From: Ranitomeya imitator
Lineage: Eukaryota
Assembly: GCF_032444005.1 (NCBI RefSeq)
Contig: NC_091282.1
Span: forward strand, 1,016,924,001-1,016,988,000
Direction: 5' to 3'
DNA length: 64,000 nucleotides
This document shows positions 19,349 through 52,950 of this stretch, piece by piece (within the stretch, counting starts at the first letter, position 1; the number at the start of each line of letters is the position of its first letter). The notes under the pieces were generated by a model. It saw only the letters and a program-made list of their open reading frames with translations. It was not told the DNA's origin and searched no databases. The translations under genes were made by a program, and so were the position numbers.

Positions 19349-21237
19349 TGCCTGATTGTGCTGTGTTGTCCTTGTGTCCACTGGTTTTGTTGTACCTGAA
19401 TAGTGAATATGGGTCCAGTTAACAGAGCACATGCTTTCCCTCGGCTAGTACTAAACCTATTGTACAAATGGTGACTGCACGGACAACACTACATTAATAC
19501 AATTGTAAAAAGCGTCATTCTGTAATAATACGTTGTAAAGGACTACAGCACACACAGGAATAACGTCTTAGGACAGCTAATTTATTTTTCCATTTCAGTA
19601 ATTACCCTTGTTATATACAGCAGAAAGTGTTATACCAATACTCCAGTATGAAAGTCCCGCTATGTATGGCGACTGCATCAGTAAGGAAACGGTCAACAGC
19701 AGAGTAGGGCTATACAATATTTTGCATGATCTCCTGTAGGTTTAGTCTGGATTACATTTTGTACAAGGCAGGGACGTAACAACTGGTCAGGGCTTGCAGA
19801 ATACATCTTGTGTCATTGTCTTGGCCATCGTCTGTCTCCTTGGTCTAATAAATGAAGATGGAGAGACCTGCACATCCTTGCTTCGTTATCACTGCCTTCT
19901 GGATTCCCCACTCATAACTGCTGATTGTGTGGGTGGTCCGGCTTAAACAAGTTATCCCCTATCCACAAGATACGTAATAACTTGTGGATCGATAAAGTCT
20001 GACCGCTGAGAATCATGTTAATCATCAGAACGGAGAACTTTTATCTGGGTCTGCTGAACACTGCGCTTGGCTTTTTTTCATCAGTCTCACAGAAAATGAA
20101 TGGTCTGGCGGTCGGGCATCCCAATCTGCTGCATCATGTTGTAACTGCTATACAAATTCTCTGATCTTCTGATCAGTGCGGATCCCACAGGTGGGATACC
20201 CTCCAATCAGCAAGTTATTATCTGTACTGTGGATAGGTGATAACGTGTCTCTAAGTACTGCAGAATGCATTATGTGCTACAGGTGATAACTGGATGCTCC
20301 TACTTGCCTTGTATGAAAGGCTACACGCAGTTTCCTAGCTATGAATACTTGGAATCTGAAAAGTTTTACTCCCTCCTTGGTCCGATGTTGCTTTTGCAGC
20401 ATGTTTTATATATTCATGCTTTTGTTTCTTCGTGTAACATTTTATTGTTGGAAAAAGGCCATTCCTGAGTTTTATCGGCTAAGTGGAAAGCACTGTTACT
20501 GCTATGAAGACTCTTGGCACTTGGGCAAGTGACAATAAGTAAAGTGGCTTATTTTTTATTACTGCCATATTGCATCATTTACTATAATACCAATTATGAT
20601 AAAGCTGCATCAAAATAAACATGGAGCATGGTCTTCAGTCAGTTCACTGTTGGTGATAAGATACTGTCATTGCCTGATAGAAACAGTCAGCAGGCGAGTG
20701 CAGGTTGGTCTGTAAGCTGGCTAATGGCTTCATGGTCAGCAATACCTTTACTGATGAGATTAGCCGGTCCATTCATAGTGTGACGTGGAGCCTCGTGCAC
20801 TCCCATGTGTGTGTCATATGTGAATAATGCCTTGTATGGTCCAGAATAGTATTCTCCCCAGGATCTTCCTAGCTCCCCCTATTTATTAATTTTTGATTTG
20901 TTTGGCTGAGTGAAGGTTTACTAGGTCACAAGTACGGTGTTAGTCTTGTCAATTCAAGCCTTCTGGAGTAGAAACACAGATTCACTAAAGCAGGTACTTG
21001 TATGTTAGACAGATCCATCTAGCGCCTCATTACATGTAATGGACTGCAGTGCATAATATGGCCGTGTATGTACCCTACACCTAGTAACAAACTGAATGCT
21101 CCTTGATGCCCTGGACTGGGTTCCTGCAGTGCCAATCACAGCTTAGCATTGTTTTCTGTAATGTGTATAGTGTCTCAGTGAGATCTAACACTATGAATCT
21201 TTACGTTTACATCCTTAGCCATCCTAATTTATTCTGG

Positions 21238-21262
21238 AATAAAAATATGTTTCTGAAATAAA
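21238..21262 (+). terminator. SCOC: Candidate distal SCOC poly(A) signals
   Basis: Two AATAAA at 21238 and 21257 followed by T/GT-rich sequence. More proximal AATAAA occur at 19847 and 20614. Usage is not provable from DNA. Confidence 0.45.
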
Positions 21263-23383
21263 GTATTTCGTTATTTTAAGCCATTTCTTGGTAACGTCAT
21301 CTTCCTTTTTGTGGAGAAGCTTGTATAAAAACTAGTTTAAAGTCATCCAACAATGGATGGAGAATCTTTTTTCAGAGAGTCGACTTCCAAGAAGTATCTC
21401 CTGTATGGATCTTTTTCCTTCTTTCAAAGAAAAAGTTAGGAGGGTGTTCATTCTGCATGCACTTCTTAACAACACAAAAGAAAGCTTTGGATAAAAACAT
21501 TAGTTTCGTTCTTACATCATAGCTGCACAGTGACCTCAAAATACATCAGTCCTGGAGATGGACTGCAGTCCATAGGCCAGGTCAGTAGTTCTGTGACCAC
21601 TAGACAGGAGGCCTGCAAATCTCCTCATCACCCCCGATATTCCTGACTCGGCTAATCCTATGAAGAGCTGGGAATGCTGGAAGGTAAGGAGATTCACAGG
21701 TCTCCCACCCAATAGTTACAGATTCCGTTCCAACAGCCAGGTCAGTAGTCCTACGAACTAATTCTTGCATCTCGATTCTGATATCTAAAAGGGAACCTGT
21801 CAGCAGGGTTGTGCGCAGTCACCTACAGACAGTGTCAGGTTGGCGCAGTTATGCTAATCAAAATGATACCATGGGAGATGAAATTCGTTAATCTCTATTT
21901 TCTTCTAATGAGGTTCTCGTGCTCCGGGGCGGCCTGTGGTGGGGTCTTCATGTAGTGCTCTGCTTAGGTATTCGTACCAATGGCTTAGGAAAGGTCACAG
22001 AAAAAATCTTTATTTTTAAGGGGAAAGAAAAAAAAAAAAAGAAGATTATTCATTCCTTCTCTCCAGCGAACGCTGCTGGGAAGAAGGGATGAATTCCGGC
22101 TTCAGCACCACACGCGGGGAGGACAGCGCTTACAGTAGCGCTGTCTCCTGCACGGCACACGGACAGCATCCGTGTGCGGTACGTGTTTTACACGGACCCA
22201 TTGACTTTGTGGGAACGCACGGATCACACGGACCCATTAAACACTGACATGTCTCCGTGTTTTTCAAACGGACACACGGTCCGTGAAAACATGCTGACAT
22301 GTGCAGAGACACATTGATTTTAATGTGTCTATGTGAGTCAGTGTCTCCGGTACGTGAGAAAACTGTCACCTCACGTACCGGAGCCACTGACGTGTGAAAC
22401 CGGCCTAAATTGGAAAATAACCCATCAAGTATATGAAATAGTTATTTGAAGTAACAATGGAAATTTGTTATTTTATTAATCTTTGACAACTTTTTTTGTT
22501 CAACACTCAGCTATAAAAGTTTAGGGATAAAATGTACATCAGGTTCATTAGATATAAAGTAGAATATCTTTAGCATCAACATGTAAAACTACACTACCAA
22601 TCAATGACGGCTATGGCAGGCTCACTATTAACCAATTGTTGGGAAGCAGAATTGCAAAAAATACTCAGGTAATAATTCAGCTTAACAAATGTCTAAAGGG
22701 TAAAATCATTTTAACCCCAAATATATTCCTGGGGCAGTAGAAACTGTATTTGATGTTGGACCCAAAATTATGCATATATATTCTATTATTTTGATGATCC
22801 AGCTGTGCTTTATAGTTATCAACGTCAACAGCCTGTTATTGTAACTTCTGAGAAATGTTTCATCTGGAAAAGATTGCAATAACGAGCTCTTCAATCAATT
22901 GCCAACTGAAGTGTTTCTGTTGCCATAAATTGGCTCTAGATGTGGAGCAACTTAACGAGCTTGGCATCACCCCATGGGCTCTTATGTTACTAAAGTCCAG
23001 TGTGGAGCAAAATCTGTGCGACAGGTCTAATGAGATGCGAGTGTAACAAGAAAAATAAATTAAGGGGCACATGGAGCTGCTGGTGACCCCTAGTTGCAAT
23101 TGTCTACATCTGTTTTGGAATTATCTACATCTGTTTTGGAATTAATAAGATATGAGTATAAGGAATTGAGATATGCTCAGCCTAATAATGCGAAACCTGG
23201 ATGCATCCAACATCTCAAAGAAAATCAATGCTTAAATCAAAAATTAAAATGAATGGGAAATGTTTAGATTTGACAAAATCTTGCTCCAAGAGCTTAAATA
23301 TGATTCCATGTCAATCAGCAGGCTGATACAGACTGGTTGGTAAGCCAGCTCTCTAGAACAGTCCCATAAATGTGCTGGAATTG

Positions 23384-23464
23384 TTAATCTTTCCGTACTC
23401 GTCTTTTACGGAGGGACTTCTTCAAGTTATCGCCACCATCTGCGCCTTCGTCTGCCTCTTTCAT
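23384..23464 (-). CDS. CLGN: Calmegin last exon (MKEADEGADGGDNLKKSLRKRRVRKD*)
   Basis: The C-terminal RKRRVRKD is the calmegin ending (calnexin ends RKPRRE). CAG acceptor, phase 0. Confidence 0.95.
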   Translation of the reverse strand: MKEADEGADGGDNLKKSLRKRRVRKD

Positions 23465-26400
23465 CTGTTGAGAAACAATAGAAGTTTTTCGGCTTGGTAA
23501 CGTGGTGGCCTCAGTCAAATGCTTTTCACCTGCTTAAGTATTTGGTCAGTATTTTACCACAGTATTTGGGAGCCAAAACCAGGAGTGGAGCAATCAGAGG
23601 AAGAGTATAATAGAAACATGTCACCACTTCTGTATTTATCACCCACTCCTGGTTTTGGCTTACAAATTCTGAGGTAAAAATACTGAACGTGTGAACATGG
23701 CCTTACAATCCAGAGACGGTCAGCCTCTGCTCCATGCAGGTACGGACTGGGGCTGAATTTCAGCCCTGGCATTTAAAATCACACAGGCGTATGCTGCCCC
23801 CATCCCCAAGCGCCAGATGGGATATTTTACTAATATCACCCTGGATGGAGAAAGCAAGATTTACTACAAGACCAATATTTCTAATGATTCCCGTGGCTGC
23901 TGGGGTAAGTGACGGAGTCACTGACTTTTTGCTCTGTCAAAACTTTTAACAGTATGAGCAACATAGCAGACAAAGCGGCTCATGACCAGACAGGCCCTTC
24001 TGGTATTTCCCAGAATTGCCAGATGGCCAGTCCTATACATTGCACACACTATTGCATCAGAACTTAATTCAGTTCTCTATCCCCTTTTTCCCTCTGTCCT
24101 CTCATGTTAGGGCCAATAACTTTTACTATGAAAATTTGGGAAACCTGCACGAAAAAATTTCCGTTAATATGGGAACAATTTCCCATGATTTCATTTTTAT
24201 TTAACCCTAAATTGCCTGACAGCTTAAAGAGTAGTCTGGTTAAGCTATGGTATTACTTTTTAACAGTACAATCTCGTTTTAACATAGCCTTGAATTATCA
24301 TTATCTAAAATTAGACACTATATGATATGTTTTGTCTGTATGGAAAATCAATATAAGCTACTTATGTTTTGCTACCATTCTGCACCCTCCCTTCTGCATA
24401 AACTTAACAGCCCCATCACACAGTATAGCCGGTATGTCCAGTACATGTGGTGACAGTTGTCACATGTACCGGTGACCCTGACACACGTAGACCCATTCAA
24501 ATAAATGGGTCTGTGCACATGTCAGTGTATTTCCACGAACAGTGTGACTGTGTGCCCACACGTAGACATGTCCGTTTTTTACCGTAGGCACGGGTGGCAA
24601 GACGTCCCACACACGTGCCCAAATTGATGTCTTCCGTGTGGCACGCATCGGCATCAGGGAAGAAGCGCTACAGTAAGCGCTGTTCCCCAGTGGCAGGTGC
24701 TGAAAACATCTCTCATCATTCTCCCTTACTCTGCCGGCGATCGGCGCGAGCAGAGGAGAATGATGATAGTTATATTAAAGTCAGAACGATGACAGAAGGT
24801 GGGGGCTTTTGGGACTCTTACTCCCATCATCCGACAGCAGTGACAGTAAGAGTGGATGATCGGGGTCTTCCTCACCTGCTGCCTGTGATACAACTAAAGA
24901 AATGAATGAAAAACCCGGTGTAGGTTCCCCCTATTTTCTTGAACCAACCAGGCAAAACTCACAGCTGGGGGCTGCAACCGTCAGCTGTCAACTTCAGCAA
25001 GGTTGGTTATCAAGAATATAGGGGTCCCCACCTAGTTTTTTTTAATTATTTCAATAAATAATAAACGGCATGGTGTCTCCCACATTTTTGACAACCAGCC
25101 TTGCTTAAGCTCACAGCTGGGGGCTGGAATTCTCAGGCTGGTAAGGGGCCATTGATATAGGCCCCCCAAACCTAAAAACAGCAGCCAAGATGCACCAATT
25201 CTGGCACTTTGCCCTGCTCTTCCCACTTGCCCTGTAGCGTTGGCAAGTGGGGTTCATATTTGTGGTGTTGATGTCATCTTTGTATTGTCTCTAAGACACC
25301 TCCATTACTAATCCTATAGTTAAATGTAAATAAAAACAGCCAAAATAAAGTCCTTTAATTAAAAAAATGACACAGACTCCTTTATTAATCTCAATTAAAC
25401 CATACTTACGACCTCGCCTAATTCCACCGAAGCCCTCGGTCTCCTGTAATAAAAGTAAAATAAAAAACAACAATATGCCATACCTGTCCATCATTCTGTC
25501 CGATGCTGTAATCCATGTCTGGGGGCTAAATAGTTTTCAACCTGGATGGTGCCAAGATGTGACCGTCCAGGCTGAGAACCACTGGTGAAAGAGCTGCTGC
25601 GAGCACAGCATCATTGACCAGCGGTGACATCATTGAGTCCAGACTGAACTGCGATGACCTCAGGACCATGGGAAAATGCCAGTAATAATGTCACCAGTGT
25701 TCAATGATGCTGCACTCGCACTAGGAGGCTGACATTAAGTGAATATAAAAAAATTAACTCCTCCTCCTCTGCAGTATACACCTACCACTGCCTCCAGCCG
25801 AACCAGTGCATACTTAGTGTCCATAGGAGGCACATGGGTCTGGTCTTCAGACCATAATTTTTTATTTTATTTTTTACTTTTTAATTTTTCAAGGATACAA
25901 GGGTGACGGATCCCTTCAGGGTTCTGATCTCCGCCAACCAACAACAGGCGGGAACATGGAGTGTCACCTCCGCGTACCCCCTACTGCATCGTTCATAGGC
26001 ATGCCTTAGCTCTATTATAGGGGCAACATGTCCCTTCAGGGCACCGCTCTCCCCGTCTCCATGTACCCCCTTCTGCAGCCAGGCTTTCTACTCCCGGACC
26101 AATAGCCCTGACCCATCCTGGGGTTGTTAACCCATAGGATGTACAGAGGCACTGATGGCGTCCGGGCGGCCCCCACTGCATCACTACTGATAGAACAGCA
26201 GTCATGGAAGGAGGTGGACGGTCCCTCTCCACATCCCTAACAAAGGATGGTGGATGGAGGGCTCCTGCACCGTCCACGTTGCAGCACCTGACCTGCAGGC
26301 AAAGCAGTCTGAGCTCTGCGCTTCTTCACAACGGGCCTCTGGATCACTGTGGGTAAGTGCTCGGGTTGGGCTCGGCAGCAGGGCTCCTGTAGCACGTGCG

Positions 26401-27086
26401 CTTTCCCCAGGGCGTTTTTTCTCCCCGGGTGCGTTCCAGTTTATGATAGGCAGTAACCCAGAAGCTCCTCCCACTCACTCAAGTCGTGCCGGAGGCTCCG
26501 CACACTCTTGGCGCTTCTCACTCAAAGTGAGACTGCCTTTCCTGCTCCCGGTGGCCATTTTTTCTTTCCGCCTCTCAGCACGTGTAGGTCAGGATTCTCC
26601 CCTGGCTGCAGGCTCACTCCTGCAATTCCCAGCAGACATCCTATCATCCAGCCATCTCTCTAGCACCAGGAGGACCGTCTCAAAGGGTCACAGGACCTGG
26701 GTAAGTGCTGTCCTGTGACACCCATTGGCCCTTCTCTGCAGTATTTCACTGGTGATTAGCCACCACTCTCCCTATTGGGGCATTTAACAGTCAGGACATA
26801 CTGGGGTACACCATGGCATTCTCTAAGACATCCAAGAGGGCTACCAAAACACAGTGTTTTTCACCTCATGTACCCCTTGCCAGACTTCGTTGCCACGGGG
26901 ACAGAGTACTCCACTCTGCAAGGCCTCTGATCCCGAATGCGCACAGGAGCCCTCCGCCGCTACCGAACCCAGTGTACCTAGTCCTCCTAGTGGGCTTCGT
27001 CACTTTCGCAGTCCATGGCTTCACTAGCTAAAGCAATTGAGTCCCTCCAAGACTCCTTGAGTCAGAGCATTCGTCTGCCTGTCTTA

Positions 27087-27563
27087 GGCCGGAGTCACAC
27101 TACAGCGTAATACGGCCGAGTGCAATGCGATAAAAAATCGCATAGCACTCCGCCCAATGTTAATCTATGGAGCAGCTCCTATTACCCGTTTTTTTTCTCG
27201 GCAGCAGTCAGGATCCGAGTGAAATCGCAGCATGCTGCGATTGGCAGCGTATCTCGGCCGAGACTCGCCAATGCAAGTCTATGCGAGAAAAACTCGCACA
27301 CCACACGGACCATCAGTGGGACATCCGTATGCAATGCGATTTTAACATGAGCTTTTACATAGAGAACTGCTGTATGTAAAAGCTCATGTTAAAATCGCAT
27401 TGCATACTGATGCCATACGGATGTCACACTGTTGCTAGATGCGAAGAAATCACATCCTCGCATTGCACACAGATGACATAAGGATCACTGTTCGGGAACA
27501 TTTGTGCGATTTTCGGCCGTCACAATCGGACCGATTTTTTTATACGGTAAGTGTGACGCCGCC
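27087..27563. mobile_element. PIF/Harbinger MITE inserted in DIRS gag
   Basis: TTA TSD, TIR GGCCGGAGTCACAC/GTGTGACGCCGCC, internal palindrome. Confidence 0.8.
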
Positions 27564-27639
27564 TTAGAGGGTTCGTCCACCACATGGGAACCGTCGGCCT
27601 GCAGGGGCCATTCTCAGTCAAACGATATACAGGCATCTA

Positions 27640-27866
27640 GAAAAATTTTATTATTATTATACATTTTTATAGCGCCATTTATTCCATGGCGCTTTACATG
27701 TGAATACGGGGCAAATATAGACAAGTACATAAGGAGGGAGGACCCTGCCTGCGAGGGCTCACAGTCTGCAGGGGGTGGGTGAGGATACACTAGGAGAGGG
27801 AAGAGCTGGCTGTGCGGCTGTTCAGTAGGTTGAGGATCACTGCAGGCTGTAGGCTTGTCGGAAGAA
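27640..27866 (-). mobile_element. L2/CR1-type LINE 3' end inserted in DIRS
   Basis: Reverse strand ends TGTAAAGCGCCATGGAATAAATGGCGCTATAAAAATGTA(TAA)n, an L2-like tail. Confidence 0.6.
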
Positions 27867-28026
27867 AATGGACCCATAGCATGTCCCCCGGGCCCTCTTG
27901 CGCCTCGGCATCCAAGAGCTCCGTTTCTCTCTCTCCCTCACCAAGGGTTTGCAGCGACCAGTACACTGAGTAGAGTCTGACAGGCCCCTCGACCTTGACT
28001 CGCTAGATGATAATTATCAGGCGACG

Positions 28027-28785
28027 GTGGATAGTCTCATACAGGCCGTCAACCAGACTTTGAAAGTTGATGAGGACTCTACCTCCACCCCGGATCACAC
28101 GGTGTCCTTCAAAATGAACAAACATCCTCATAGGGTATTTGTCAATTACCGCGAGTTTCAGGACATAGTTCGGCGGCATAAAGAGCGGCCGGACAAACGC
28201 TTCTCAGGTCAGAAGCCTCTTAAAGCGAGATACCCTTTCTCATCTGATCTGTGTAAGCAATGGGCAGAATCCCCTCCGGTTGATTCACCTGTATCTCATC
28301 TGGCCTACAAAACGCTCCTATCTTTACCAGACGGATCCTTGATTAAAGATCCCACGGACCATCTGATAGAAAACCTTGCCCGTTTGGTTTTTGAAGCCTC
28401 GGGCTCAGCACTCTCTCCCTCTTTTGCCGCAAAATGGGTAGCCAAAGCAATGGTCTCCTGGGCAGATACTCTGAGCAGGACCATACAGGGTAGTGATCTT
28501 CTCCCGAAGGCAGCGGATCTGGCCAATCAGATCTCTTTGGCCGGGGACTATTTGGTACAAGCTTCTCTGGACGAGGCTAACTGCGCTGCGCTTGCGGCCT
28601 CAAACGCTGTCTCTATTAGGCAGTCACTGTGGCTCAGGGAATGGCAAGCGGACTCTGCGTACAAAAAGTCCCTAACCTCTCTGTCTTACCAGAGCGGTCA
28701 TTTGTTCGGAGAGAAGCTGGATCAGCTTATCTCTGACGCCACAGGAGGGAAGAGTAAATTCTTCCCCCAGCAGAAAGTTAAGTGA
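28027..28785 (+). pseudogene. DIRS1 gag (ORF1) C-terminal part, 252 aa
   Basis: YPF...W..PP.VD.PV..L and R..LWLREWQAD...KKSL..L...G.LFGEKLD.LI..ATGGKS motifs typical of vertebrate DIRS gag. Confidence 0.85.
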
Positions 28786-28994
28786 CCCTTTCGCTGCCCG
28801 CAACAATCACGTTTCTGGTCCTTTTGCAGCAATCCCGGTTGGTCGACTACAGCCAGCTCTTCTTGATCGGGGCGCTCCCCTCATGGGGACAGAGATCCCC
28901 AGGTTTCATATAAGACCAACCAGTCGTGGAAGAGTCAACCTAAGCAGTCCAGAGCTAAGGGATCCAAATCCCATAGATTCTCTTTCTAAATGAC

Positions 28995-29948
28995 TTGTGG
29001 CATTGTCCGGTTGACACCAGCAGAGTAGGCGGTCGTCTACACCGGTTTCGTCATGGAGGTCCTGGGCAAGATGATAGCAGTGATGGAAGCTGTTCCCTTC
29101 ACCCTGCTACACCTCCGTCCTCTGCAGCATGCACTTCTGGCAGCCTGATTTGTCCCTGCGGGTCAAGCAGGGACTCAGGTGGTCCTCTCTCATCCAGGGG
29201 AAATCCTTTCTCCCGGTTCATTGGCTGGTGGTCACTACCGACGCCAGCCTCCTCGGCTGGGGAGCTGTCTTCCGTCACCACACTGCCCAGGGGGGTTGGT
29301 CACATCGGAAATCGTGCCTTCCAATCAACGTCATGGAGATTCGGGCGACCTGGTTGTCCCTGCGGCAGTTCCATCATCTCCTGGCGGGTCACCCCATCCG
29401 AGTTCAATTGGACAATGCCACAGCTGTGACATATGTCAACTATCAAGGGGACACCCGCAGCAGGGCGGCAATGCACGAGGCGGAACACATCCTCCGCTGG
29501 GCCGAAAGAAACCACTCAGTCATGTCGGCAGTTCACATCCTGGGTATAGAAAACTAGATGGCAGACGTCCCCAGCCGTCAAGGTCTCGCCTCGGGAGAGT
29601 GGTCACTTCATCCGGAGGTCTTCTAATAGATTTGTCCTCACTGGGGGACTCCGGATGTGGATCTCATGGCCTCAAGATTAAATGCCAAGGTGTCAGAGTT
29701 CATGGCTCGGTCCCGGGATCCAGAAGCCATCGGGGCAGATGCACTGGTTCTTCTGTGGCACCAGTTTAATCCGTACTTGTTTCCCCCACTTCCGTTAGTC
29801 CTGAGGGTCATCAGGAAGATCAAGGCGGAGGGGTTCCCAGTGATCTTGGTCGCTCCGGACTGGCCATGCCGGGCGTGGTACGCTGAGTTGGTGCAACTTG
29901 TCACCATCCCCTGGCGACTACCAGATCTTCCGGACTTACTCTCCCAGG
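28995..29948 (+). pseudogene. DIRS1 pol remnant: RT core deleted, RNase H and MT domains degraded
   Basis: VGGRLHRF jumps directly to MEVLGKMIAVMEAVPF, with no YLDD. Stops occur at 29555 and elsewhere. Confidence 0.82.
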
Positions 29949-30739
29949 TGTTATGACTTGGTGGTTAGGAGCACCCGAAATGACCTGATGGTTAAACCGA
30001 TACAGGACAAGCTCTGGGAAGTGGGAACTCTGCTGACCGCAATCCCTAATCCTATCACACACACTAGAAATAGCCGTGGAGCGTACCTAACATGGCCTAG
30101 ACGCCTCGACACAGCCTAAGAACTAGCTAGCCCTAGAGACAGAAAATAAAGCCTACCTTGCCTCAGAGAAATTTCCACAAAGGAAAAGGCAGCCCCCCAC
30201 AAATATTAACTGTGAGTAAAGATGAAAGTCACAAACACAGAAATGAAACAGGTTTTAGCAAAGGGAGGCCAGACTAACTAAATAGACAGAGGATAGGAAA
30301 GGTATCTTTGCGGTCAGCACAAAAAACTACAAAAGACCACGCAGAGTGTGCAAAAAGACCCCCGCACCGACTCACGGTGCGGAGGTGCCACTCTGCATCC
30401 CAGAGCTTCCAGCTAGCAAGACAAAATCATGAAAGCAAGCTGGACAAGGAAACAACAGAAAATAACAATCGGGGACTTAGCTTCTTGCAGGAAGAGACAG
30501 GTCACCAGAAAGATCCAAGAGCGAACTGAACCAGTACAGGAACATTGACAGCTGGAATGGAGTAACGATCTGAGTGGAGTTAAATAGAGAAGCCAGCCTA
30601 AGAATAACCTAGGTCACCTGTGGAAGGAACCTCAGAACCAGCAACTCCACTCACAGCCACCAGAGGGAGTCCATGGACAGAACTCGCCGAAGTACCATTC
30701 ATGACCACAGGAGGGAGTTCGATAACAGAATTCACAACA
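29949..30739 (-). mobile_element. Solo LTR (Gypsy, related to the LTR at 62087) inserted in the DIRS element
   Basis: TG...CA ends with duplicated CCCAGG flanks. Removing it restores DIRS LLSQGPICH. The reverse complement begins TGTTGTGAATTCTGT, like 62087. Confidence 0.9.
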
Positions 30740-30847
30740 CCCAGGGCCCGATTTGCCACCAGATCTCAGGGGCCTTGTTTAGCGACATGGCTGTTGAATC
30801 CCGGGTCCAAATTCAAGCTGGATTCTCCAAAGAGGTAGTTTTCCACC

Positions 30848-31695
30848 ATGATTAGCGCTCGGAAGCCTGTCTCGGTGCGCATCTATCACCGCACCTGGAA
30901 AACTTTTTTCGCATGGTGCAGAGACCGCGGTCATCCTCCTCTTGTCTTCTCCATCCCCACCATATTGGAATTTCTTCATTCCTTTCTAGACTCAGGTCTA
31001 GAGCTTAGCTCCCTCAAAGGCCAGATTTCTTCTTTATCTGTTTTGTTCCAGCGCAGGATCGCTTCCAAGTCGCAGGTGAGGACTTTCACTCAGGAGGTCT
31101 CCCACGTGGAACCTTCCTATAGAATGCCTTTGGATGCCTGGGACCTTAACTTGGTCCTAGGTGTTCTACAGGAGACTCCTTTCGAACCACTGTGGGACAT
31201 TTCGCCAAACCACCTTTCATGGAAGGTCGTCTTCCTTGTCGCGGTGACGTCAATTAGGCAGGTTTTGGAGCTGGCTGCCCTGTCCTGTCGAGCTCATTTT
31301 CTAATTTTCCAGCAGGACAAAATGGTTCTCAGGCCATCCCCGTCCTTCTTGCACCTTAATGAGGACATTGCCCTCGTTTTGCCCGGCACCGGTACACCGG
31401 GTTGAAAGGGCTCTTCACACTCTGAATCTAGTGAGAGCTCTAGGTACGTCTCACGGACCGTGCTTTTCCATCAGACGGATGCGTTGTTCGTGCTTCCTGA
31501 GGGTCACAGGAAGGGACTAGCCGTCTACAAAAGCCAGGTGAATATGGTCGGTTATTCAAGAGTCTTTCCGTGTCAGGGACAAGGCTATCCCAGTGGGAAT
31601 TAAGGCATACTCCACTCGGTCGATGGGTGCTTCTTGGGCCATTCGGCACCAGGCGACGGTGGAACAGGTTTGCAAGGCTGCGACTTGGTCCAGTC
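30848..31695 (+). pseudogene. DIRS1 tyrosine recombinase, frameshifted and 3'-truncated
   Basis: ARKPVS.RIYHRTWKTF...LKGQISSLS...R..ELAALS...; a later frame reads KAYSTRSMGASWA (HSTR box). The segment with the catalytic Tyr is missing. Confidence 0.85.
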
Positions 31696-32340
31696 TGTCC
31701 CCCAATGATGCGAAGGAGAAACAGGGTTTTTGTGTAAACGTAAAATCCTTTTCTCCTAGCCACTCATTGGGGACACAGTACCCACCCTGTTGGCCTGATG
31801 GCTATGTTTGTTCTTTTGCTTTGACATGTGTACCCATATTTGATGGTTTTGATCTCCTACTGCTTTGTCACTGTCACTGAGGAGTTAATTTTTTTATATT
31901 CACTTAGTGTCAGCCTCCTAGTGGCAGCAGCATACACCCATGGTCCTGTGTCCCCCAATGAGGTGAAGGAGAAAATCTACTTTTTAGGCAAGTCAACCAC
32001 ATTCACCAGTCAACCACTTTCTTTTTCCTTTCCCCCTTCTACATCATTCTTTAGAACATGCTACCCCCTCGGCACTATTTCCTTCACCCTTTACATGTTA
32101 TTGCACTTTCTATTAATACATACGCAGATACTGACTTGATGAGAGGTTCATCCACCTTGACAATATCTCATTTTGTTTGTAAATGATCCCTCTTAAAAGT
32201 ACATTGCTGTGGAGTATGCTGGCGCTATATAAGTAATAAATATTATAGCTGTACAATACATGTGCGTTACAAACACTTAACATCTGTCAAAAATGAATGT
32301 TAAAGAAGCTCTTCTCCCATCAAAGTTTATATCTTCTTGA

Positions 32341-32961
32341 AGGGAAGCTGTCACCCCCAAAATGGAAGATGAGCTAAGTCCACCGGCATCAGGGGCTTAT
32401 CTACAGCATTCTGTAATGCTGTAGATAAGCCCCTGATGTATCCTGAAAGATGAGAAAAATAGGTTAGATTATACTCACCTGGGCGGGCGATCCGATCCGA
32501 TGGGCGTCGCGGTCCGGTCCGGGGCCTCCCATCCTCATAGGATGACATCCTCTTCTTGTCCTCACGCTGCTGCTCCGGCGCAGGCGTACTTTGTCTACCC
32601 TGTTGAGGGCAGAGCAAAGTACTGCAGTGCGCAGGCGCCGAGCCTCTCTGACCTTTCCCGATGCCTGTGCACTGCAGTACTTTGCTCTGCCCTCAACAGG
32701 GCAGACAAAGTACGCCTGCGCCGGAGCGTGAAGACAAGAAGAAGACGTCATCGTAAGAAGATGGGAGGCCCCGGACCGGACCGCGACGCCCATCGGACCG
32801 GACCGCAGCGTGACCGCCCCTGGATGAGTATAATCTAACCTCTTTTTCTCATCTTTCAGGATACATCGTGGGCTTATCTACAGCATTACAGAATGCTGTA
32901 GATAAGCCCCTGATGCCGGTGGGCTTAGCTCATCTTCCATTTTGGGGGTGACAGGTTCCCT
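32341..32961. mobile_element. Kolobok/T2 fold-back MITE
   Basis: TTGA|AGGGAAGCTGTCACCCCCAAAATGG...CCATTTTGGGGGTGACAGGTTCCCT|TTAA. Almost the whole element is palindromic. Confidence 0.85.
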
Positions 32962-33489
32962 TTAATATATTGCAGTCATCATATCATACAGCACTGTATA
33001 CTTACAATTGCTCATTTTGCCTGTCCACCCAGCTAATTCTTCTCTTTTATCTGCTCTATGTAGAAAAAGAATGTCTCTTGCCTCTGCATTTAACATTACC
33101 CTCTTCATCTCCTGACCCTGCTGCTCCACCCCTGCTCCCTGCCAGGGACTTTTGCAGTGATTTTTGACTCATACAGGAAAAAATTACCTTCTCTTTCTAT
33201 ATACAACTAAAAAAGATTTAGCTAGTCTGTTTTTAATCACATAATGTCATAGACCTAATGGAAAAAAGAAGTATTAACTGGGTAGAAGGGCAAAATGATC
33301 AATTGTAAGTACACAGTTCTACATAATATGATGATTGCAATATATTAAGGGGATAAAATTTTGATGGGAGAAGTGCTTCTTTAAAAACAACAAGGCTGTT
33401 AGGACACATACACAGATACACATACACAGATACAAACCTTCATGTCAGTTTTTGGTGCAGTTTTTTTGAACCAGCAGAGACACATTTAC

Positions 33490-33590
33490 CTCATCATCAG
33501 AAGACGGATTTACTATTTCTCCACCATCTTCATCTTCTTGACTGAATTCCTCATCTTCCTCCTCATTTTCTGTCTTCTCAACGTCATCAC
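33490..33590 (-). CDS. CLGN: Calmegin acidic cytosolic-tail exon (GDDVEKTENEEEDEEFSQEDEDGGEIVNPSSDDE)
   Basis: 101 nt with AG/GT boundaries; phases 1 and 0 fit the flanking exons. Confidence 0.9.
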
Positions 33591-35933
33591 CTAGATACAT
33601 CAAAATAGTAATTTATCATAAAAGAAAATACGTACAACCCAAATAACTAAGTTTGAACAGTTGTATCAGAAGATGCGACAATAACAATGTCTAACAACAG
33701 ATATATAACGAAAAATAGTATATCTGTGTAATAATGTAACTTAAATGAGAACAGTCATCTTGTTATATGTTAACCCTTTAAGCAGATTGTGTGGAGTGTA
33801 GCTTGAACTTCACACACCTCCTAAATATGTCAACATTAATGTATGATCAGGTGACAGAAATGGTCTCGAACAAGAAGCACCACACAAAAGAATATCTTTG
33901 ATGCATTTTTAAAGTAGAAACTTATTCAAATTTTATAACATGTATATAACTGGAAAAGCTGAAAGGGGGAGACCAGGAAGAATAAAGGTCAACTGTCATT
34001 AGGTTTATGCTGCATGAACCATGTTTAAGGGCTCATACTCATCAGCGAGGAAAACGGATGAGTGCAATCCAATAAAAAAAAAAAATCGGATTGCACTCTG
34101 ACCAATGTTAACCTATGAGCCCCTGTTCATCTGCGATTTTTTTTTTTCTCAGCTCAGATTGGGATGAGAAAAAAATTTGCAGCATGTTGCGATTGTCCTA
34201 GTATCTCGGATGAGATTTGCCAATGCACGTGAATGGCTGTGATAAAAAAAAAACGCATGGCACTTGGACCATGTGAGTGCGGTCTGATTTTTATGCACCC
34301 ATGAACCAGCAGAGAGAAAGCGGATAGCTGGGGGCAAAAGTTTATAGCCTGGAAAGGAGGTAATACCCATGGAGCTTCCCAGGCTACTAAAATCAGCTCA
34401 CAGCTGTATACTTACCCTTTCCTGGTTACTAAAATGGAGGACTGCCCAAATAAATGACATAGGGTCCCCCTATAATTAATAACCAGCAAAGGCTAGGAGG
34501 CAGACAGCTGCAGGCTGATATTGATATTGTCCCCATCCCAGACTAAAAACAACAGCTCTACATAAGATGACACTTAGCCTTGCTCTTTCAACTTGCCCTG
34601 GTCGCTTGCCGCAACACTTCAGGCTCTGCTACATCTAGATGGCATACTGCATTGTGGCATGATGTGACTATACAGCCTGCCATCCAGCAGAGACACTGAG
34701 CTGCGCTTGCTTGCTCAGAACCTTGCAGTGAGCTCCCTTCATCTTACTGACATCACCGCGAGTGTGAGAAAGTTCACACGCTCGGGGTGCCGTCAGAAAG
34801 GTCCTGGGAGTTTAGAGCCAATGAACTCTGTTAACCCCTTTCTGCCATTAGACAGAGGGAGGTGGCTTACCAAGTGCCTGCTCAGAGCAGGCACTTGGTA
34901 ACGCTGCACTGCTCTCAGACAGATCGGTGACCTGTCAGAGTGCTGTGCAAACTGGCAGATCACCGATCTGTATTGTCCCCCCCCCCGGGACAAAGTAAAA
35001 AAGTTTAAAAAAAATTTTACAAGTGTGTTAAAAAAAAAAAAAATCCTAAATAATGAAAAAAAAATATATATATATTATTCCCATAAATACATTTCTTTAT
35101 CTAAATAAAAAAAAAAAAACAATAAAAGTACACATATTTAGTATCGCCGCGTCCGTAACGACCCGACCTATAAAACTGGCCCACTAGTTAACCCCTTCAG
35201 TAAACACCGTAAGAAAAAAAAAAGAGAGACAAAAAACAATGCTTTATTATCATACCGCCGAACAAAAAGTGGAATAACACGCGATCAAAAAGACAGATAT
35301 AAATAACCATGGTACCGCTGAAAGCGTCATCTTGTCCCGCAAAAACGAGCCGCCATACAGCAACATCAGCAAAAAAATAAAAAAGTTATAGTCCTCAGAA
35401 TAAAGCGATGCAAAAATAATTATTTTTTCTATAAAATAGTTTTTATCGTATAAAAGCGCCAAAACATTAAAAAAATGATAAAAATGAGGTGTCGCTGTAA
35501 ACGTACTGACCCGAAGAATAAAACTGCTTTATCAATTTTACGAAACGCGGAACGGTATAAACGCCTCCCCCAAAAGAAATTCATGAATAGCTGGTTTTTG
35601 GTAATTCTGCCTCACAAAAATCGGAATAAAAAGCGATCAAAAAATGTCACGTGCCCGAAAATGTTACCAATAAAAACGTCAACTCGTCCCGCAAAAAACA
35701 AGACCTCACATGATTCTGTGGACCAAAATATGGAAAAATTATAGCTCTCAAAATGTGGTAACGCAAAAAATATTTTTTGCAATAAAAAGCGTCTTTCAGT
35801 GTGTGACGGCTGCCAATAATAAAAATCCGCTAAAAAACCCGCTATAAAAGTAACTCAAACCCCCCTTCATCACCCCCTTAGTTAGGGAAAAATAAAAAAA
35901 AATTTAAAAAATGTATTTATTTCCATTTTCCCA

Positions 35934-36210
35934 TTAGGGTTAGGGCTAGGGTTAGGGTTAGGGCTAGGGTTAGGGCTAGGGTTAGGGCTAGGGTTAGGGC
36001 TACGGTTAAGGCTAGGGTTAGGGCTAGGGTTAAGGCTACAGTTAGGGTTAAGGCTACAGTTAGGGCTGGGGCTAAAGTTAGGGTTAGGGTTTGGATTACA
36101 TTTGCGGTTGGGAATAGGGTTGGGATTAGGGTTAGGGGTGTGTCTGGGTTAGAGGTGTGGTTAGGGTTACCGTTGGAATTAGGGTTAGGGGTGTGTTTGG
36201 ATTAGGGTTT
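35934..36210 (+). repeat. Interstitial telomere-like array (TTAGGG/CTAGGG and variants)
   Basis: About 25 near-perfect hexamers to about 36090, decaying beyond. Confidence 0.92.
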
Positions 36211-36229
36211 CAGTTATAATTTGGGGGTT

Positions 36230-38050
36230 TCCACTGTTTAGACACATCAGGGGCTCTCCAAACGCGACATGGCGTCCGATCTCAATTCCAGCCAATTCTG
36301 CGTTGAAAAAGTAAAACAGTGCTCCTTCCCTTCCGAGCTCTCCCGTATGGCCAAACAGTGGTTTACCCCCACATATGGGGTATCAGCGTACTCAGGACAA
36401 ATTGGACAACACCTTTTGGGGTCCAATTTCTCCTGTTACCCTTGGGAAAATACAAAACTGGGGGCTAAAAAATAATTTTGGGGGGAATTTTTTTTTTTTC
36501 ACGGCTCTGCGTTAGAAACTGTAGTGAAACACTTGGGGGCTCAAAGTTCTCACAACACATCTAGATAAGTTCCTTGGGGGGTCTAGTTTCCAATATGGGG
36601 TCACTTGTGGGGGGTTTCTACTGTTTAGGTACATTAGGGGCTCTGCAAACGCAATGTGACGCATGCAGACCATTCCATCTAAGTCTGTATTCCAAATGGC
36701 GCTCCTTCCCTTCCGAGCCCTCCCATGCGCCCAAACGGTGGTTCCCCCCCACATATGGGGTATCAGCGCAGTCAGGACAAATTGCACAACAACTTTTGGG
36801 GTCCAATTTCTCCTGTTACCCTTGGGAAAATATAAAACTGGGGACTAAAAAATAATTTTTGTGGGAAAAAATTTTTGTTTTATTTTTACGGCTCTGCATT
36901 ATAAACTTCTGTGAAGCTCTTGGTGGGTCAAAGTGCTCACCACACATCTAGATAAGTTCCTTAGGGGGTCTACTTTCCAAAATGGTGTCACTTGTGGGGG
37001 GTTTCAATGTTTAGGCACATCAGTGGCTCTCCAAACGCAACATGGCGTCTCATCTCAATTCCTGTGAATTTTGCATTGAAAAGTCAAACGGCGCTCCTTC
37101 CCTTCCGAGCTCTCCCATGCGCCCAAACAGTGGTTTAACCCCACATATGGGGTATCAGCGTATTCAGGACAAATTGTACAACAACTTTATGGTTCCAATT
37201 TCTTCTCTTACCATTGGGAAAATAAAAAATTGGGGGCGAAAAGATAATTTTTGTGAAAAAAAAATGATTTTTTATTTTTACGGTTCTGCATTATAAACTT
37301 CTGTGAAGCACTTGGTGGGTCAAAGTGCTCACCACACCTCTAGATAAGTTCCTTAGGGGGTCTACTTTCCAAAATGGTGTCACTTGTGGGGGGTTTCAAT
37401 GTTTAGGCACATCAGTGGCTCTTCAAACGCAACATGGCGTCCCATCTCAATTCCTGTCAATTTTGCATTGAAAGGTCAAACGGCGCTCCTTCCCTTCCGA
37501 GCTCTCCCATGCGCCCAAACAGTGGTTTACCCCCACATATGGGGTATCGTCGCACTCAGGACAAATTGTGCAACAACTTTTTGGTTCCAATTTCTTCTCT
37601 TACCATTGGGAAAATAAAAAATTGGGGGCGAAAAGATAATTTTTGTGAAAAAAAATGATTTTTTATTTTTACAGTTCTGCATTATAAACTTCTGTGAAGC
37701 ACTTGGTGGGTCAAAGTGCTCACCACACCTCTAGATAAGTTCCTTAGGGGGTCTACTTTCCAAAATGGTGTCACTTGTGGGGGGTTTCAATGTTTAGGCA
37801 CATCAGTGGCTCTCCAAACGCAACATGGCGTCCCATCTCAATTCTAGTCAATTTTGCATTAAAAAGTCAAATGGCGCTCCTTCGCTTCCAAGATCTGTCA
37901 TGCGCCCAAACAGTGGTTTACCTCCACTTATGGGGTATTGGCGTACTCAGGACAAATTGTACAACAAGGTTTGGGGTCCATTTTCTCCTGTAACCCTTGG
38001 TAAAATAAAACAAATTGGAGCTGAAGTAAATTTTTTGTGAAAAAAAGTTA
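36230..38050. repeat. About 390-bp tandem repeat, about 5 copies
   Basis: Homologous ORF starts at 36269, 37042, 37434 and 37825 (steps 773, 392, 391). TCTAGATAAGTTCC...GTCACTTGTGGGGGGTTTC recurs. Confidence 0.9.
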
Positions 38051-45508: not shown

Positions 45509-47114
45509 CAGTGGGGAAAAAAAGTATTTAGTCAGTCAGCAGTAGTGCAAGTTCCACCACTTAAAAAGATGAGAGGCGTCTGTAATTTACATCATAGGTA
45601 GACCTCAACTATGGGAGACAAACTGAGAAAAAAAATCCAGAAAATCACATTGTCTGTTTTTTTAACATTTTATTTGCATATTATGGTGGAAAATAAGTAT
45701 TTGGTCAAAAACAAACAATCAAGATTTCTGGCTCTCACAGACCTGTAACTTCTTCTTTAAGAGTCTCCTCTTTCCTCCACTCATTACCTGTAGTAATGGC
45801 ACCTGTTTAAACTTGTTATCAGTATAAAAAGACACCTGTGCACACCCTCAAACAGTCTGACTCCAAACTCCACTATGGTGAAGACCAAAGAGCTGTCAAA
45901 GGACACCAGAAACAAAATTGTAGCCCTGCACCAGGCTGGGAAGACTGAATCTGCAATAGCCAACCAGCTTGGAGTGAAGAAATCAACAGTGGGAGCAATA
46001 ATTAGAAAATGGAAGACATACAAGACCACTGATAATCTCCCTCGATCTGGGGCTCCACGCAAAATCCCACCCCGTGGGGTCAGAATGATCACAAGAACGG
46101 TGAGCAAAAATCCCAGAACCACGCGGGGGGACCTAGTGAATGAACTGCAGAGAGCTGGGACCAATGTAACAAGGCCTAGCATAAGTAACACACTACGCCA
46201 CCATGGACTCAGATCCTGCAGTGCCAGACGTGTCCCACTGCTTAAGCCAGTACATGTCCGGGCCCGTCTGAAGTTTGCTAGAGAGCATTTGGATGATCCA
46301 GAGGAGTTTTGGGAGAATGTCCTATGGTCTGATGAAACCAAACTGGAACTGTTTGGTAGAAACACAACTTGTCGTGTTTGGAGGAAAAAGAATACTGAGT
46401 TGCATCCAACAAACACAATACCTACTGTAAAGCATGGTGGTGGAAACATCATGCTTTGGGGCTGTTTCTCTGCAAAGGGGCCAGGACGACTGATCCGGGT
46501 ACATGAAAGAATGAATGGGGCCATGTATCGTGAGATTTTGAGTGCAAACCTCCTTCCATCAGCAAGGGCATTGAAGATGAAACGTGGCTGGGTCTTTCAA
46601 CATGACAATGATCCAAAGCACACCGCCAGGGCAACGAAGGAGTGGCTTCGTAAGAAGCATTTCAAGGTCCTGGAGTGGCCTAGCCAGTCTCCAGATCTCA
46701 ACCCTATAGAAAACCTTTGGAGGGAGTTGAAAGTCCGTGTTGCCAAGCGAAAAGCCAAAAACATCACTGCTCTAGAGGAGATCTGCATGGAGGAATGGGC
46801 CAACATACCAACAACAGTGTGTGGCAACCTTGTGAAGACTTACAGAAAACGTTTGACCTCTGTCATTGCCAACAAAGGATATATTACAAAGTATTGAGAT
46901 GAAATTTTGTTTCTGACCAAATACTTATTTTCCACCATAATATGCAAATAAAATGTTAAAAAAACAGACAATGTGATTTTCTGGATTTTTTTTTTCTCAG
47001 TTTGTCTCCCATAGTTGAGGTCTACCTATGATGTAAATTACAGACGCCTCTCATCTTTTTAAGTGGTGGAACTTGCACTATTGCTGACTGACTAAATACT
47101 TTTTTGCCCCACTG
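45509..47114 (+). mobile_element. Full-length Tc1/mariner transposon (IR/DR type, 1606 bp)
   Basis: TA TSD on both sides. The ~205-bp TIRs begin CAGTGGGG and carry inner and outer direct repeats (AAGTATTT.GTCA). Confidence 0.97.
45875..46897 (+). CDS. Tc1-family DD34E transposase, 340 aa, uninterrupted
   Basis: Paired-like HTH N-terminus, WSDET, HDNDPKH and [11 protein letters not shown], with 34 residues between the second D and the E. Confidence 0.96.
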
Positions 47115-47565
47115 TATATGTGTGTGATAAGTATTGAACACGTCACAAGTTTCTATTTGACATGACATTCTTACCTGATGTCGGTAACAACCCATTCAAT
47201 CCACACAAGCAAAAGAAATCAAACCATAGATGTCCATAATGTTAGTTATATGTAATATTGAGAAATGACAAAGGGAAAAAGTATTGAACGCATACTGAAG
47301 TTTATTTAATATTTCGTACAAAAGCCTTTGTCGGTGAAGACAACTTCAAGACACATCTTGTATGGAGAAAATAGTCAAATGCATTGCACAGGTGTGATTT
47401 TGGTCCATTCTTCCACACAAACATTCTTCAAATCCTGAAGGTTCAGTGGGTTCCTTCTATAAACTATGAGCTTTAGTTCCTTCCATAAATTTTCTATTGG
47501 ATTCAGGTTAGGTGATTGGCTGGACCATTCTAGCAGCTTTATTTTCTTTCTCTGAAACCAATTAA

Positions 47566-47760
47566 GGCTGCCGTCACACTATCAGTATTTGGTCAGTATT
47601 TTACATCAGTATCTGTAAGCCAAAACCAGGAGTGGAACTATTAGAGGAAAAGTATAATAGAAACATATGCACCACTTCTGCATTTATCACCCACTCCTGG
47701 TTTTGGCTTACAAATACTGATGTAAAATACTGACCACATACTGGTAGTATGACGGCAGCC
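47566..47760. mobile_element. Harbinger MITE (TCAGTATTT family; relatives at 23540-23703 and 55725-55900)
   Basis: TAA TSD and TIR GGCTGCCGTCA/TGACGGCAGCC. Confidence 0.8.
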
Positions 47761-48126
47761 TAAGAGTTTTCTTTTGCTGTGTGTATGGGATCATTGTCTT
47801 GCTGAAATGTCCACCCTCATTTCACCTTAATCATCTGGTTAGATGGCAGCAGATTCAAGAATGTCTTGGTACATTTGTCCATTCATCCTTCCTTCAATGA
47901 TATGAAGATTGCCAGTGCCATATGCTGAAAAACAGCCCCACACCATGATGTTCCCACCTCTACACTTCACTGTTGGTATGGTGCATTTGGGGTGAAAAGC
48001 AGTGCCATTTCGCCTCCAAACATGGTGAGTATTACGGCATTCAAAGAGTTTAATTTTGGTGTCATCTAATCGGACTATATTTTCCCGGTATTTTTCAGGC
48101 CAAATGTTGTTGAGCAAACATTAAAT

Positions 48127-48575
48127 GTCCATCCAAGTAGAAAAGAAATGGCAGCACTCACCGATCCTTCCAAGAGAGGTAACTTTATTGGCTTATATTA
48201 AAATCTTCACGGCCGGGTTTGCAGATTTACAGAGTGCGGCAAGCCTGACGACGGCCGTTTCGCGCCCACCTGACGCTTCTACGGGTCAGACTCACCCGTA
48301 GAAGCTCCAGGTGGGCGCGAAACGGCTGTCGTCAGGCTTGCCGCACTCTGTAAATCTGCACCCCCGGCCGTGAAGATTTTAATATAAGCCAATAAAGTTA
48401 CCTCTCTTGGAAGGATCGGTGAGTGCTGCCTTTTCTTTTCTACTTGGATGGATTTTATGACATGTTCGGGCTGAAGCACCCGTGATCTGGCGGTCACACT
48501 CCCATCGCAGGTGAGCAGGCATAATTATCCTCTTAAGCAGTGGTGCTGTCAGCTGTGCTCTCTTGCAGATCGATA
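48127..48575. mobile_element. Penelope-like (pLTR) insertion with an inverted 5' duplication
   Basis: 12-bp flanking direct repeat CAAACATTAAAT (48115-48126, 48576-48587), ~158-bp inverted arms, hammerhead-like motifs and an AATAAA...GGTGAGTGC tail. The family call is an inference. Confidence 0.6.
48242..48292 (-). ncRNA. Hammerhead-like motif with variant core
   Basis: Minus strand reads AGTCTGAC-CCGTAGAA-GCGTC(AGGTG)GGCGC-GAAA-C(GGCC)G-TC|GTCAGGCT: 8-bp stem I, 5-bp stem II and a palindromic stem III loop. Confidence 0.65.
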
Positions 48576-49538
48576 CAAACATTAAATATGCTTAAACGGG
48601 CATTTTGTTCAGCAATGGAGTCTTGCATTGTGAGTGTGCTTACAAGCCATGGAGGTTGAGTGCATTACTTATAGTATTCTTTGAAAAAAATGTACCTGCT
48701 GATTCCAGGTCTTTCTGTAGCTCTCCACAGGTGGTCCTTGACTTGGATAACTCCTCTGACAATTATTTTCACTTCTATGTCCAAAATCTTGAGGGGACCA
48801 CCTGGTTGTGGCCGGTTTATGATGAAATGATGATCTTTCCACTTCCGGGTTATAGCCCCAACAGTGCTCACTGTGACCTTGAGTAGTTTTGAAATTCTTC
48901 TGTAACCAATGCCATCAGTGTGTTTTGCAACAATAAGGTTGCAAAGGTCTTGAGACCGTTCACTGGTTTTACCCATCATGAGATGTATTTTGTGTGGCAC
49001 CTTGGTAATGAAACACCTTTTTACAGGCCATCAGTTGACCCACTTGATATTATTTTCATTAAGTGGCAGGATTGCTTTCTATTTACTGATAGATTGCAGC
49101 TGGTGCTATGACTTTGCATGGCTTTTTGCACCTCTCTTTCTTCATGTGTTCAATACTTTTCTCTGTCATTTTTCATTATTATACATAACTTAATTTATGG
49201 ACATCTACGGTTTGATTTCCTTCCCTGTGTGGATTGGATGGATTGTTACCGACATCTGGTGAGACTTTCATGTCAATGAAAGTTAGAAATATATTTACTT
49301 GGAAACCTGTGGTGGCGTGTTTAATACTTATTTCACTCACTGTATGCATGTATATTGTGAGAGATCAGCTCTATGGTAGACACTGGTTCATACACAAGAT
49401 TCAGCTTGTCGATTCAAACAAACGGGCAATTTCTTAAATATTCATAAACCGTTTGGTTTCACAAAAAAAACAGCCTCTCCCGGGTACAAAGAAGTTATAA
49501 CAGAACAAAAATAGAAAATATCCAGTGCATAAAAAGCA

Positions 49539-52549: not shown

Positions 52550-52643
52550 ATGGGGCTGTGTAAATTAATCACTGTACATTTTAAATATATCCATACAGAC
52601 ACTTACACACAGAGATATAAATACATATAGGTATACAGCAAAC

Positions 52644-52859
52644 CTCATTGGCACTGGCCACCAGTTTCTTCAGTCCCCAGCTATCAGAAGCCCAACGGTC
52701 TGCCACTTCCTTCTCTGTACAGATAATAAAGTTGTCAAAATAGATATTAGATGTCATTGACCATAGCTCCAAACCAATGGCACTGAAAGGCGTCATTCTG
52801 AATGGATTGAGGTCCTCAAAGTAATGTGGGTTTGGGATTTTACGTGGTTTCCAAATTCC
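52644..52859 (-). CDS. CLGN: Calmegin exon ([16 protein letters not shown]...[18 protein letters not shown]...SANE)
   Basis: 216 nt carrying the calreticulin-family GLELWSM/FDNFII motifs, with AG/GT boundaries. Confidence 0.97.
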
Positions 52860-52950
52860 CTGTACAAAAAAACAACAAAAAAAAACAAATTCAGATCTGG
52901 TATAAAATATAACAGAGTAAAAACTAGTATTGACCATACAGAATAATCAC

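Follow-up and report, generated by a model that had tools for sequence, protein, structure and literature searches.

The hammerhead core is among the best-mapped relations between sequence and function in RNA, and to our knowledge U4 and A6 are fixed in every hammerhead search descriptor. In an intron of a calmegin-type gene of Ranitomeya imitator, two hammerhead-like motifs face each other with both of these positions changed, and the question is whether they belong to a natural variant of the ribozyme, are the decayed remains of a canonical one or have nothing to do with hammerheads. The window analysed, that is, the whole stretch of DNA, comprised 64 kb without N. Copies of the sequence elsewhere were sought by aligning Logan contigs on 47900-48700 at 80% likeness; the contigs came from two species and from four public runs, three of them DNA (X1, X2 and X4) and one SMART cDNA (X3). 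The reading that we favour, with a probability of about 0.6, is that of an old insertion, dead on arrival, of a Penelope-type element (or of a passenger of such elements) into a Tc1 remnant within the calmegin-type intron, with a CCGUNGA core that would be common to the whole family and part of an attenuated module.

The two motifs form the centre of a palindrome of 325 bp, whose arms (48128-48289 and 48291-48452, 162 nt each) were 96% complementary and separated by 1 nt. Seven of the 162 nucleotides differed between the arms, all by substitution and none by an indel; with the direction of change taken from the contig majority, three differences fell on the left side and four on the right, the latter all inside the motif. 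The left arm (48127-48289, minus strand, reading outward) corresponds to the shorter, inverted copy of an element, truncated at its 5' end at the palindrome centre (48290), which is the truncation point of both copies and lies 2 to 3 nt upstream of the motif's own stem I. The right copy (48291-48575, plus strand, 285 nt) extends from the motif as far as the insertion's 3' end and was colinear with other copies of the family, contigs of which spanned 48328-48520 at 83% identity. Its last 123 nt (48453-48575) form an extension present in the right copy only, which was rarer in the family and whose final 55 nt were absent from the second species. Depth along the right copy was about 3,000 up to 48439 and 270 to 990 thereafter, with a value of 0 for X4 from 48521.

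Two further features of the right copy resemble splice signals. On the plus strand, 150 nt (48419-48568) run from a strong donor-like G/GTGAGT (48418/48419) to a pyrimidine tract and a CAG ending at 48568, and a second donor-like site, CAG/GTGAGC, was present at 48510/48511. Penelope-like elements are known to retain introns.

The insert, of about 449 bp, was flanked by exact 12-bp repeats of CAAACATTAAAT (48115-48126 on the left and 48576-48587 on the right), a target that contains ATT; when extended by two bases, the repeat measured 14 bp with one mismatch. The insertion target was a decayed Tc1/mariner transposase gene on the minus strand, recognised by Tc1 motifs in the translated open reading frames, which occupies 47839-48126 and resumes at 48588-48760. 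Thousands of Tc1 contigs matched this flanking remnant. In other Tc1 copies the target sequence was found once and uninterrupted, with many contigs joining 48125/48127 straight to 48603, and deletion of the insert together with one duplicate restored colinearity with the intact Tc1 at 45875-46897. The exact duplicates, the uninterrupted Tc1 copies and the restored colinearity thus indicate a single insertion event with a 12-bp target duplication.

These junctions also bear on a technical explanation, according to which the palindrome would be an assembly artefact, produced by a chimeric long read of the fold-back type. Fold-backs of Penelope elements do cause difficulties in genome assembly (PMC8557442), and among the contigs listed no independent one bridged the centre at 48290. 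However, the arms differ by substitutions at seven positions, the target duplication encloses the whole insert, the left junction is spanned by a cDNA contig (47931-48183 plus 9) with letters specific to the locus and the right one by a DNA contig (48505-48686), so that we regard an artefact as hardly credible. A contig of the second species contained another joint between opposite strands of this family, at 48231/48359.

The organisation of the insert is in agreement with a Penelope-type origin. Penelope-like insertions are typically 5'-truncated, often with an adjacent inverted copy that is also 5'-truncated; one-sided extensions are frequent, and the hammerhead lies near their 3' end (PMC8557442). 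With purified Poseidon protein, both strands of AT-rich DNA are cut and extended, and reverse transcription starts at internal positions (PMC11167929). Cutting of two strands together with internal initiation would yield two copies with outward 3' ends, matching the arrangement observed here, where an inverted 5'-truncated copy, a one-sided extension and an AT-rich target duplication were all found. By this mechanism, the 3' part of the element would have been placed twice, head to head and in 5'-truncated form, the 3' end of each copy abutting one side of a staggered cut in AT-rich DNA, and the stagger would have given rise to the 12-bp duplication. The two motifs would face each other because both copies start just upstream of the hammerhead-type module. 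No reverse-transcriptase or GIY-YIG gene was found in the insert or in the whole window, and thus the Penelope assignment rests on insertion style and motif type. The source of the 285-nt 3' fragment may have been an autonomous element or else a passenger that is non-coding. A tRNA-derived SINE was rejected, no tRNA-like gene having been found.

Inspection of the better motif (48242-48292, minus strand), together with folding, bore out the hammerhead layout described in the initial annotation. From 48292 to 48242, the minus strand consists of AGUCUGAC, CCGUAGA, A, GCGUC, AGGUG, GGCGC, GAAA, C, GGCC, G and UC, followed beyond the predicted cut by GUCAGGCU. Stem I comprises 8 bp (48285-48292 with 48242-48249), three of which borrow the centre base and the opposite arm, the element's own stem I being about 5 bp. 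The core CCGUAGA (48278-48284) is followed by an unpaired A (48277), a stem II of 5 bp (48272-48276 with 48262-48266, the first pair being G48276-C48262) with its loop (48267-48271), the GAAA (48258-48261), C15.2 (48257), which pairs with G16.2, the palindromic loop GGCC (48253-48256) and GUC (48250-48252), the cut being predicted at 48250/48249. The three-helix order of a hammerhead (stem I, box, stem II, GAAA, helix III, NUH, stem I) was therefore present in a type I arrangement, with helix III made up of A15.1-U16.1 and C15.2-G16.2 around GGCC; positions 15.2-16.2 plus loop III belong to the palindrome ACGGCCGU (48251-48258). G12-A14, the A15.1-U16.1 pair and a cut-site H17 other than G were all found. 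With respect to the core box C3 U4 G5 A6 N7 G8 A9, both copies deviated from CUGANGA in the two positions that had been annotated, U4 to C and A6 to U, and kept C3, G5, G8 and A9. The extra A that had been listed as a further anomaly is indeed present at 48277, but it is no oddity, since it equals the unpaired nucleotide usual in Penelope-type minimal hammerheads (PMC4209133).

Other registers that would offer a canonical CUGANGA, among them the CUGACGA at 48245-48251 of the plus strand, were rejected, as they were without a matching GAAA and stems. As far as we know, none of the hairpin, twister and pistol ribozyme classes fits the motif. The minimal hammerheads of Penelope elements, for their part, are characterised by an unpaired nucleotide after A9, a G10.1-C11.1 pair, a palindromic 15.2-16.2 plus loop III and a short stem I, and they occur in thousands of copies per amphibian genome, with opposite-strand pairs 100 to 700 bp apart (PMC4209133). 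All of these motif signatures were present here, from the unpaired A and G10.1-C11.1 to the palindromic loop III and the short stem I.

The mirror motif on the plus strand (48294-48338, core at 48296-48302, predicted cut at 48330/48331) had been said to share the altered core and to be damaged elsewhere, in accordance with the arm comparison. Its private changes were located at 48293 (stem I, G to C), 48306-48307 (stem II, which reads GCUCC) and 48327 (loop III, which reads GGCU); at the last of these the family majority letter (T to C) gives back the GGCC of the left arm. Folding of this motif was no better than that of shuffled sequence.

Since both arms stem from one insertion, the contigs, rather than the arms, inform on whether the altered core is private to the locus. 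A block of 41 nt (48247-48287, minus strand: GAC, core, stem II, GAAAC, GGCC, GUC and GUC), bounded on one side by the outermost conserved stem I pair and on the other by its partner, showed a depth comparable to that of the Tc1 flanks (20,000 to 37,000) and 10 to 100 times that of the remainder of the arms. In the bin 48251-48277, represented by hundreds of contigs, summed depth (which is not equivalent to copy number) reached 25,211 in X1, 22,519 in X2 and 14,880 in X4. Loose contig ends clustered at 48247/48248 and at 48286-48289, and agreement of the flanks was low (0.38 to 0.65), so that the shared unit is the 41-nt block, set in many contexts.

The contig data are aggregates in which copies below 80% likeness are invisible, and the family consensus was read from the differences listed, beside which there were 170 further ones. 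Among the differences listed, no majority difference was found between 48231 and 48326, core included, and the block showed insertions and deletions only (48265-48273), which in these aggregate data, as distinct from single copies, affected loop II and the two strands of stem II. Letters private to the locus were flagged elsewhere, at Tc1 sites, at 48219 and 48227 in the left arm and at 48327, 48353, 48384 and 48398 in the right arm. With no listed majority difference in the core across hundreds of contigs, the altered core appears as a family trait and not as decay. The proposal that it predated the inverted duplication and might be the family consensus was thus upheld, and the canonical CUGANGA consensus that would have contradicted it was not found among the contig differences listed for the two species. 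Judged by these contigs, the left copy is the consensus, altered core CCGUNGA included, of a very abundant repeat family present in at least two species.

It could still be argued that a CUGANGA hammerhead decayed privately and that both arms took their core changes from one mutated parent, because arms derived from a single insertion event agree with each other whatever the family looks like. Nevertheless, the contigs number in the hundreds and come from two species, with the private letters lying outside the core, and two or three changes within 7 nt would be improbable at a decay of about 2% per arm; we attach almost no probability to private decay. The conservation of the block among transposon copies is partly a matter of youth rather than of selection. 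The block extends 3 nt past the predicted cut, and a pile-up of copy ends at that cut was not seen in the contig data. In the RNA sense, the sequence after the motif was C/U-rich in about 65 to 107 contigs per run, the plus-strand consensus being G-rich with an agreement of about 0.47, which may point to a major subfamily carrying a pyrimidine tract directly after the predicted cut.

Searches in other material were also performed. The pattern of the motif's 3' half gave 0 matches in viral contigs, and three metagenome matches to a 21-nt probe (L001, L002 and L003) were dismissed as chance, since they lay inside GC-rich bacterial coding DNA. No candidate family copies emerged when the open frame of the arm was used for a word search at the protein level. 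The core string retrieved only PCR primers from the literature, and no description of a CCGUNGA hammerhead, or of dendrobatid hammerheads, was found in the literature searched, a search outside which Lunse et al. 2017 fell.

The resemblance to a hammerhead was also weighed against chance. The 31-nt motif pattern occurred in these two places only (0 expected), and the 64-kb window contained no further copies of the motif beyond the pair. A stem-aware hammerhead descriptor that allowed up to two core mismatches found 0.15 loci per 64 kb in Markov-randomised sequence, and thus the shape on its own is weak evidence; the palindrome and the family data, in turn, are not chance. Rfam reported no hammerhead in the region at E <= 10 or in the whole window at gathering scores, a silence without informative value, since Rfam also missed the canonical minimal hammerhead at 727-779 (E <= 10). 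That motif, on the plus strand, is of the canonical Penelope type (CCACA, CUGAUGA, G, GGG-caaauaa-CCC, GAAAC, AGCU, GUC and UGUGG). An alignment suggesting flanks common to it and the variant family proved spurious, and the two families are unrelated.

A reading with no relation to hammerheads, in which the locus would be a fold-back DNA transposon or MITE, or a chance likeness inside a generic palindrome, can invoke the chance rate of the shape and the absence of an Rfam hit, as well as the lowest-energy fold of the single motif, a rod instead of a three-way junction. The Rfam result carries no weight for the reason given, whereas the limit of the family block coincides exactly with the outer stem I pair, and GAAAC, the palindrome and GUC are all retained within it. 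Besides, the arms are unequal by the one-sided 123 nt, and a target duplication of 12 to 14 bp is atypical of cut-and-paste elements. This reading is very improbable, though somewhat less so than an artefact or private decay.

Whether the variant core of our preferred, Penelope-type reading cuts was approached by folding. A single motif on its own folded at -14 to -21 kcal/mol; the hammerhead shape was feasible for the monomer at -14.1 kcal/mol, and the closed rod had the lowest energy. With two sense copies, in contrast, the lowest-energy fold was a double hammerhead (-47.1 versus 2 x -21.4 kcal/mol). U4C and A6U each gave the rod about 2 kcal/mol extra, CCGU being paired with ACGG, and together they reduced the gain from dimerisation from 12.3 to 4.3 kcal/mol. 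In the source element, sense copies on tandem transcripts would pair through ACGGCCGU to form the double hammerhead, and both core changes would tip the single motif toward the closed rod. The letters for chemistry and the cut site were all kept (C3, G5, G8, A9, G12-A14, A15.1-U16.1 and C17). The 3' half of the palindrome and C17 play no part in the rod fold, and no majority change was found there among those listed.

When a type III hammerhead was subjected to complete pairwise mutagenesis, all double mutants within CUGA were of low activity, and no rescue was observed (PMC9901934). Canonical Penelope hammerheads are themselves poor cleavers in vitro (PMC4209133), and the Poseidon hammerhead requires Poseidon's own protein, insertion in vitro being possible without the hammerhead (PMC11167929). 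With the uridine turn altered, cutting is expected to be slow at best and dependent on the dimer and on the element's protein. Our reading is that of an attenuated module, derived from the hammerhead, that is predicted to cut slowly at best and only with assistance; the chances that it cuts at all in vivo would be about even.

A stronger claim, that CCGUNGA is an active natural hammerhead core in a very abundant Penelope-type family of dendrobatid frogs, seems doubtful to us. Somewhat less likely again is a fully functional natural class with efficient self-cleavage in vivo, in which both letters of the uridine turn would be replaceable together. The retention of the catalytic and cut-site letters, of A15.1-U16.1 and of the palindromic helix III in so abundant a family speaks for such a class, as does the lack of listed majority changes in the palindrome's 3' half and C17, where the rod imposes nothing. 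So do single natural variants: U4C is found in a viroid, which remains infectious, and A6C in the phage Bcep176, where cleavage is slow; such changes lower activity without abolishing it (PMC3088659). The pairwise mutagenesis, with low activity for every double mutant inside CUGA and without positive epistasis (PMC9901934), tells against it, however, together with a competing rod stabilised by 4 kcal/mol per monomer through both changes, the poor cleavage in vitro of even the canonical Penelope hammerheads (PMC4209133) and contig data without ends at the predicted cut.

Comparison with known systems places the family close to the Penelope minimal hammerheads (Cervera and De la Pena 2014, PMC4209133), with which it shares the type I layout, the one-pair helix III, a palindrome that permits dimers, the pairing on opposite strands and the position near the element's 3' end. 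It differs from them in its core, where U4C and A6U occur together. Published searches demanded either CUGANGA or a U3-A8 swap, so that a CCGUNGA family was beyond their reach. The natural core variants of Perreault et al. 2011 (PMC3088659) are changed at the same two positions, but they are isolated cases with one change each; here both changes are present, the second being A6U and not A6C, throughout a high-copy family.

Animal non-LTR retrozymes are likewise non-coding, carry a type I hammerhead and are common in frogs, and their mobilisation by Penelope-like elements has been supposed (PMC7229834; bioRxiv 10.64898/2026.07.22.740005). However, they form tandem arrays of 170- to 400-nt units with canonical cores and give circular RNAs (PMC7229834; bioRxiv 10.64898/2026.07.22.740005), whereas the locus studied here holds one 285-nt copy and an inverted partial copy with a variant core, and no direct repeats were found within 47500-49200. 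Naiad and Chlamys Penelope-like elements, which proliferated massively without a canonical hammerhead, show the same tandem and inverted insertions (PMC8557442). Naiads lack the fold altogether, in contrast to the present family, in which the complete fold and the remaining core letters are retained.

As for the locus itself, the translated minus strand encodes calnexin/calmegin-type sequence on both sides of the intron; the upstream exon region (52587-52898) matched the Pfam calreticulin family (PF00262, E = 4.9e-17). With exons on this strand on both sides, the left, better copy is sense to the pre-mRNA, in agreement with the intronic, sense placement of the initial annotation. The head-to-head pairing pointed out in the initial annotation carries no significance for ribozyme function. 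Motifs on opposite strands cannot form a hammerhead dimer within one transcript, which contains one motif and the antisense of the other, and both are locked in a hairpin of about 160 bp that minus-strand RNA of the region was predicted to form (-318 kcal/mol, z = -41). The head-to-head pair reflects nothing more than the inverted layout, with 5' truncation, that Penelope-like insertions usually have (PMC8557442). On these folding predictions the locus is inert, its motifs being on opposite strands and its sense copy buried in the hairpin. The arms look to have decayed neutrally since insertion, as fits the proportion of differing positions (7/162) and the four private changes in the right motif. 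No effect on the host gene was evident beyond the long double-stranded RNA hairpin in the intron.

Several observations were made in the cDNA run X3, whose loose ends contained template-switch oligo sequence. A contig of depth 126 with locus-specific letters crossed the junction between Tc1 and the left arm and ended in non-templated Cs and the oligo near 48192; another oligo-capped end was found at 48399, the two ends being approximately mirror-symmetric inside the two arms. This looks like reverse-transcriptase stops in the RNA hairpin. The ttt at 48184-48186 was read as ccc in the cDNA (A to G on minus-strand RNA), which could reflect editing or another copy.

Other features of the neighbourhood were recorded. 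The Tc1 at 45875-46897 (plus strand) is an uninterrupted open reading frame of 340 aa for a transposase of the Tc1/Sleeping Beauty type, with HTH_SB, HTH_Tnp_Tc3_2 and DDE_3 domains, and may be a young copy. Directly to the left of the Tc1 remnant, a separate hairpin inverted repeat (47565-47761; 71-nt arms, 94% complementary, 55-nt loop) is probably a MITE; its sub-threshold matches to plant microRNA precursor models were attributed merely to the long hairpin. On the plus strand at 28027-28785, an open reading frame of 252 aa matched the Pfam LAP2alpha domain (E = 2.3e-11).

The locus constitutes a clean fossil of the insertion mechanism, in which the fold-back copies, the target duplication and the uninterrupted sister sequence are all preserved. 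If CCGUNGA were an active core, two uridine-turn positions long considered invariant would be replaceable together, and current hammerhead descriptors and covariance models would overlook a whole class. The ribozyme would then be more tolerant than in vitro mutagenesis indicates, perhaps with the aid of a protein or of the dimer. In the other case, Penelope-type elements would keep the fold for a role other than cutting, for example RNA pairing or recognition by the reverse transcriptase. Either outcome would inform what hammerheads do for Penelope-type elements.
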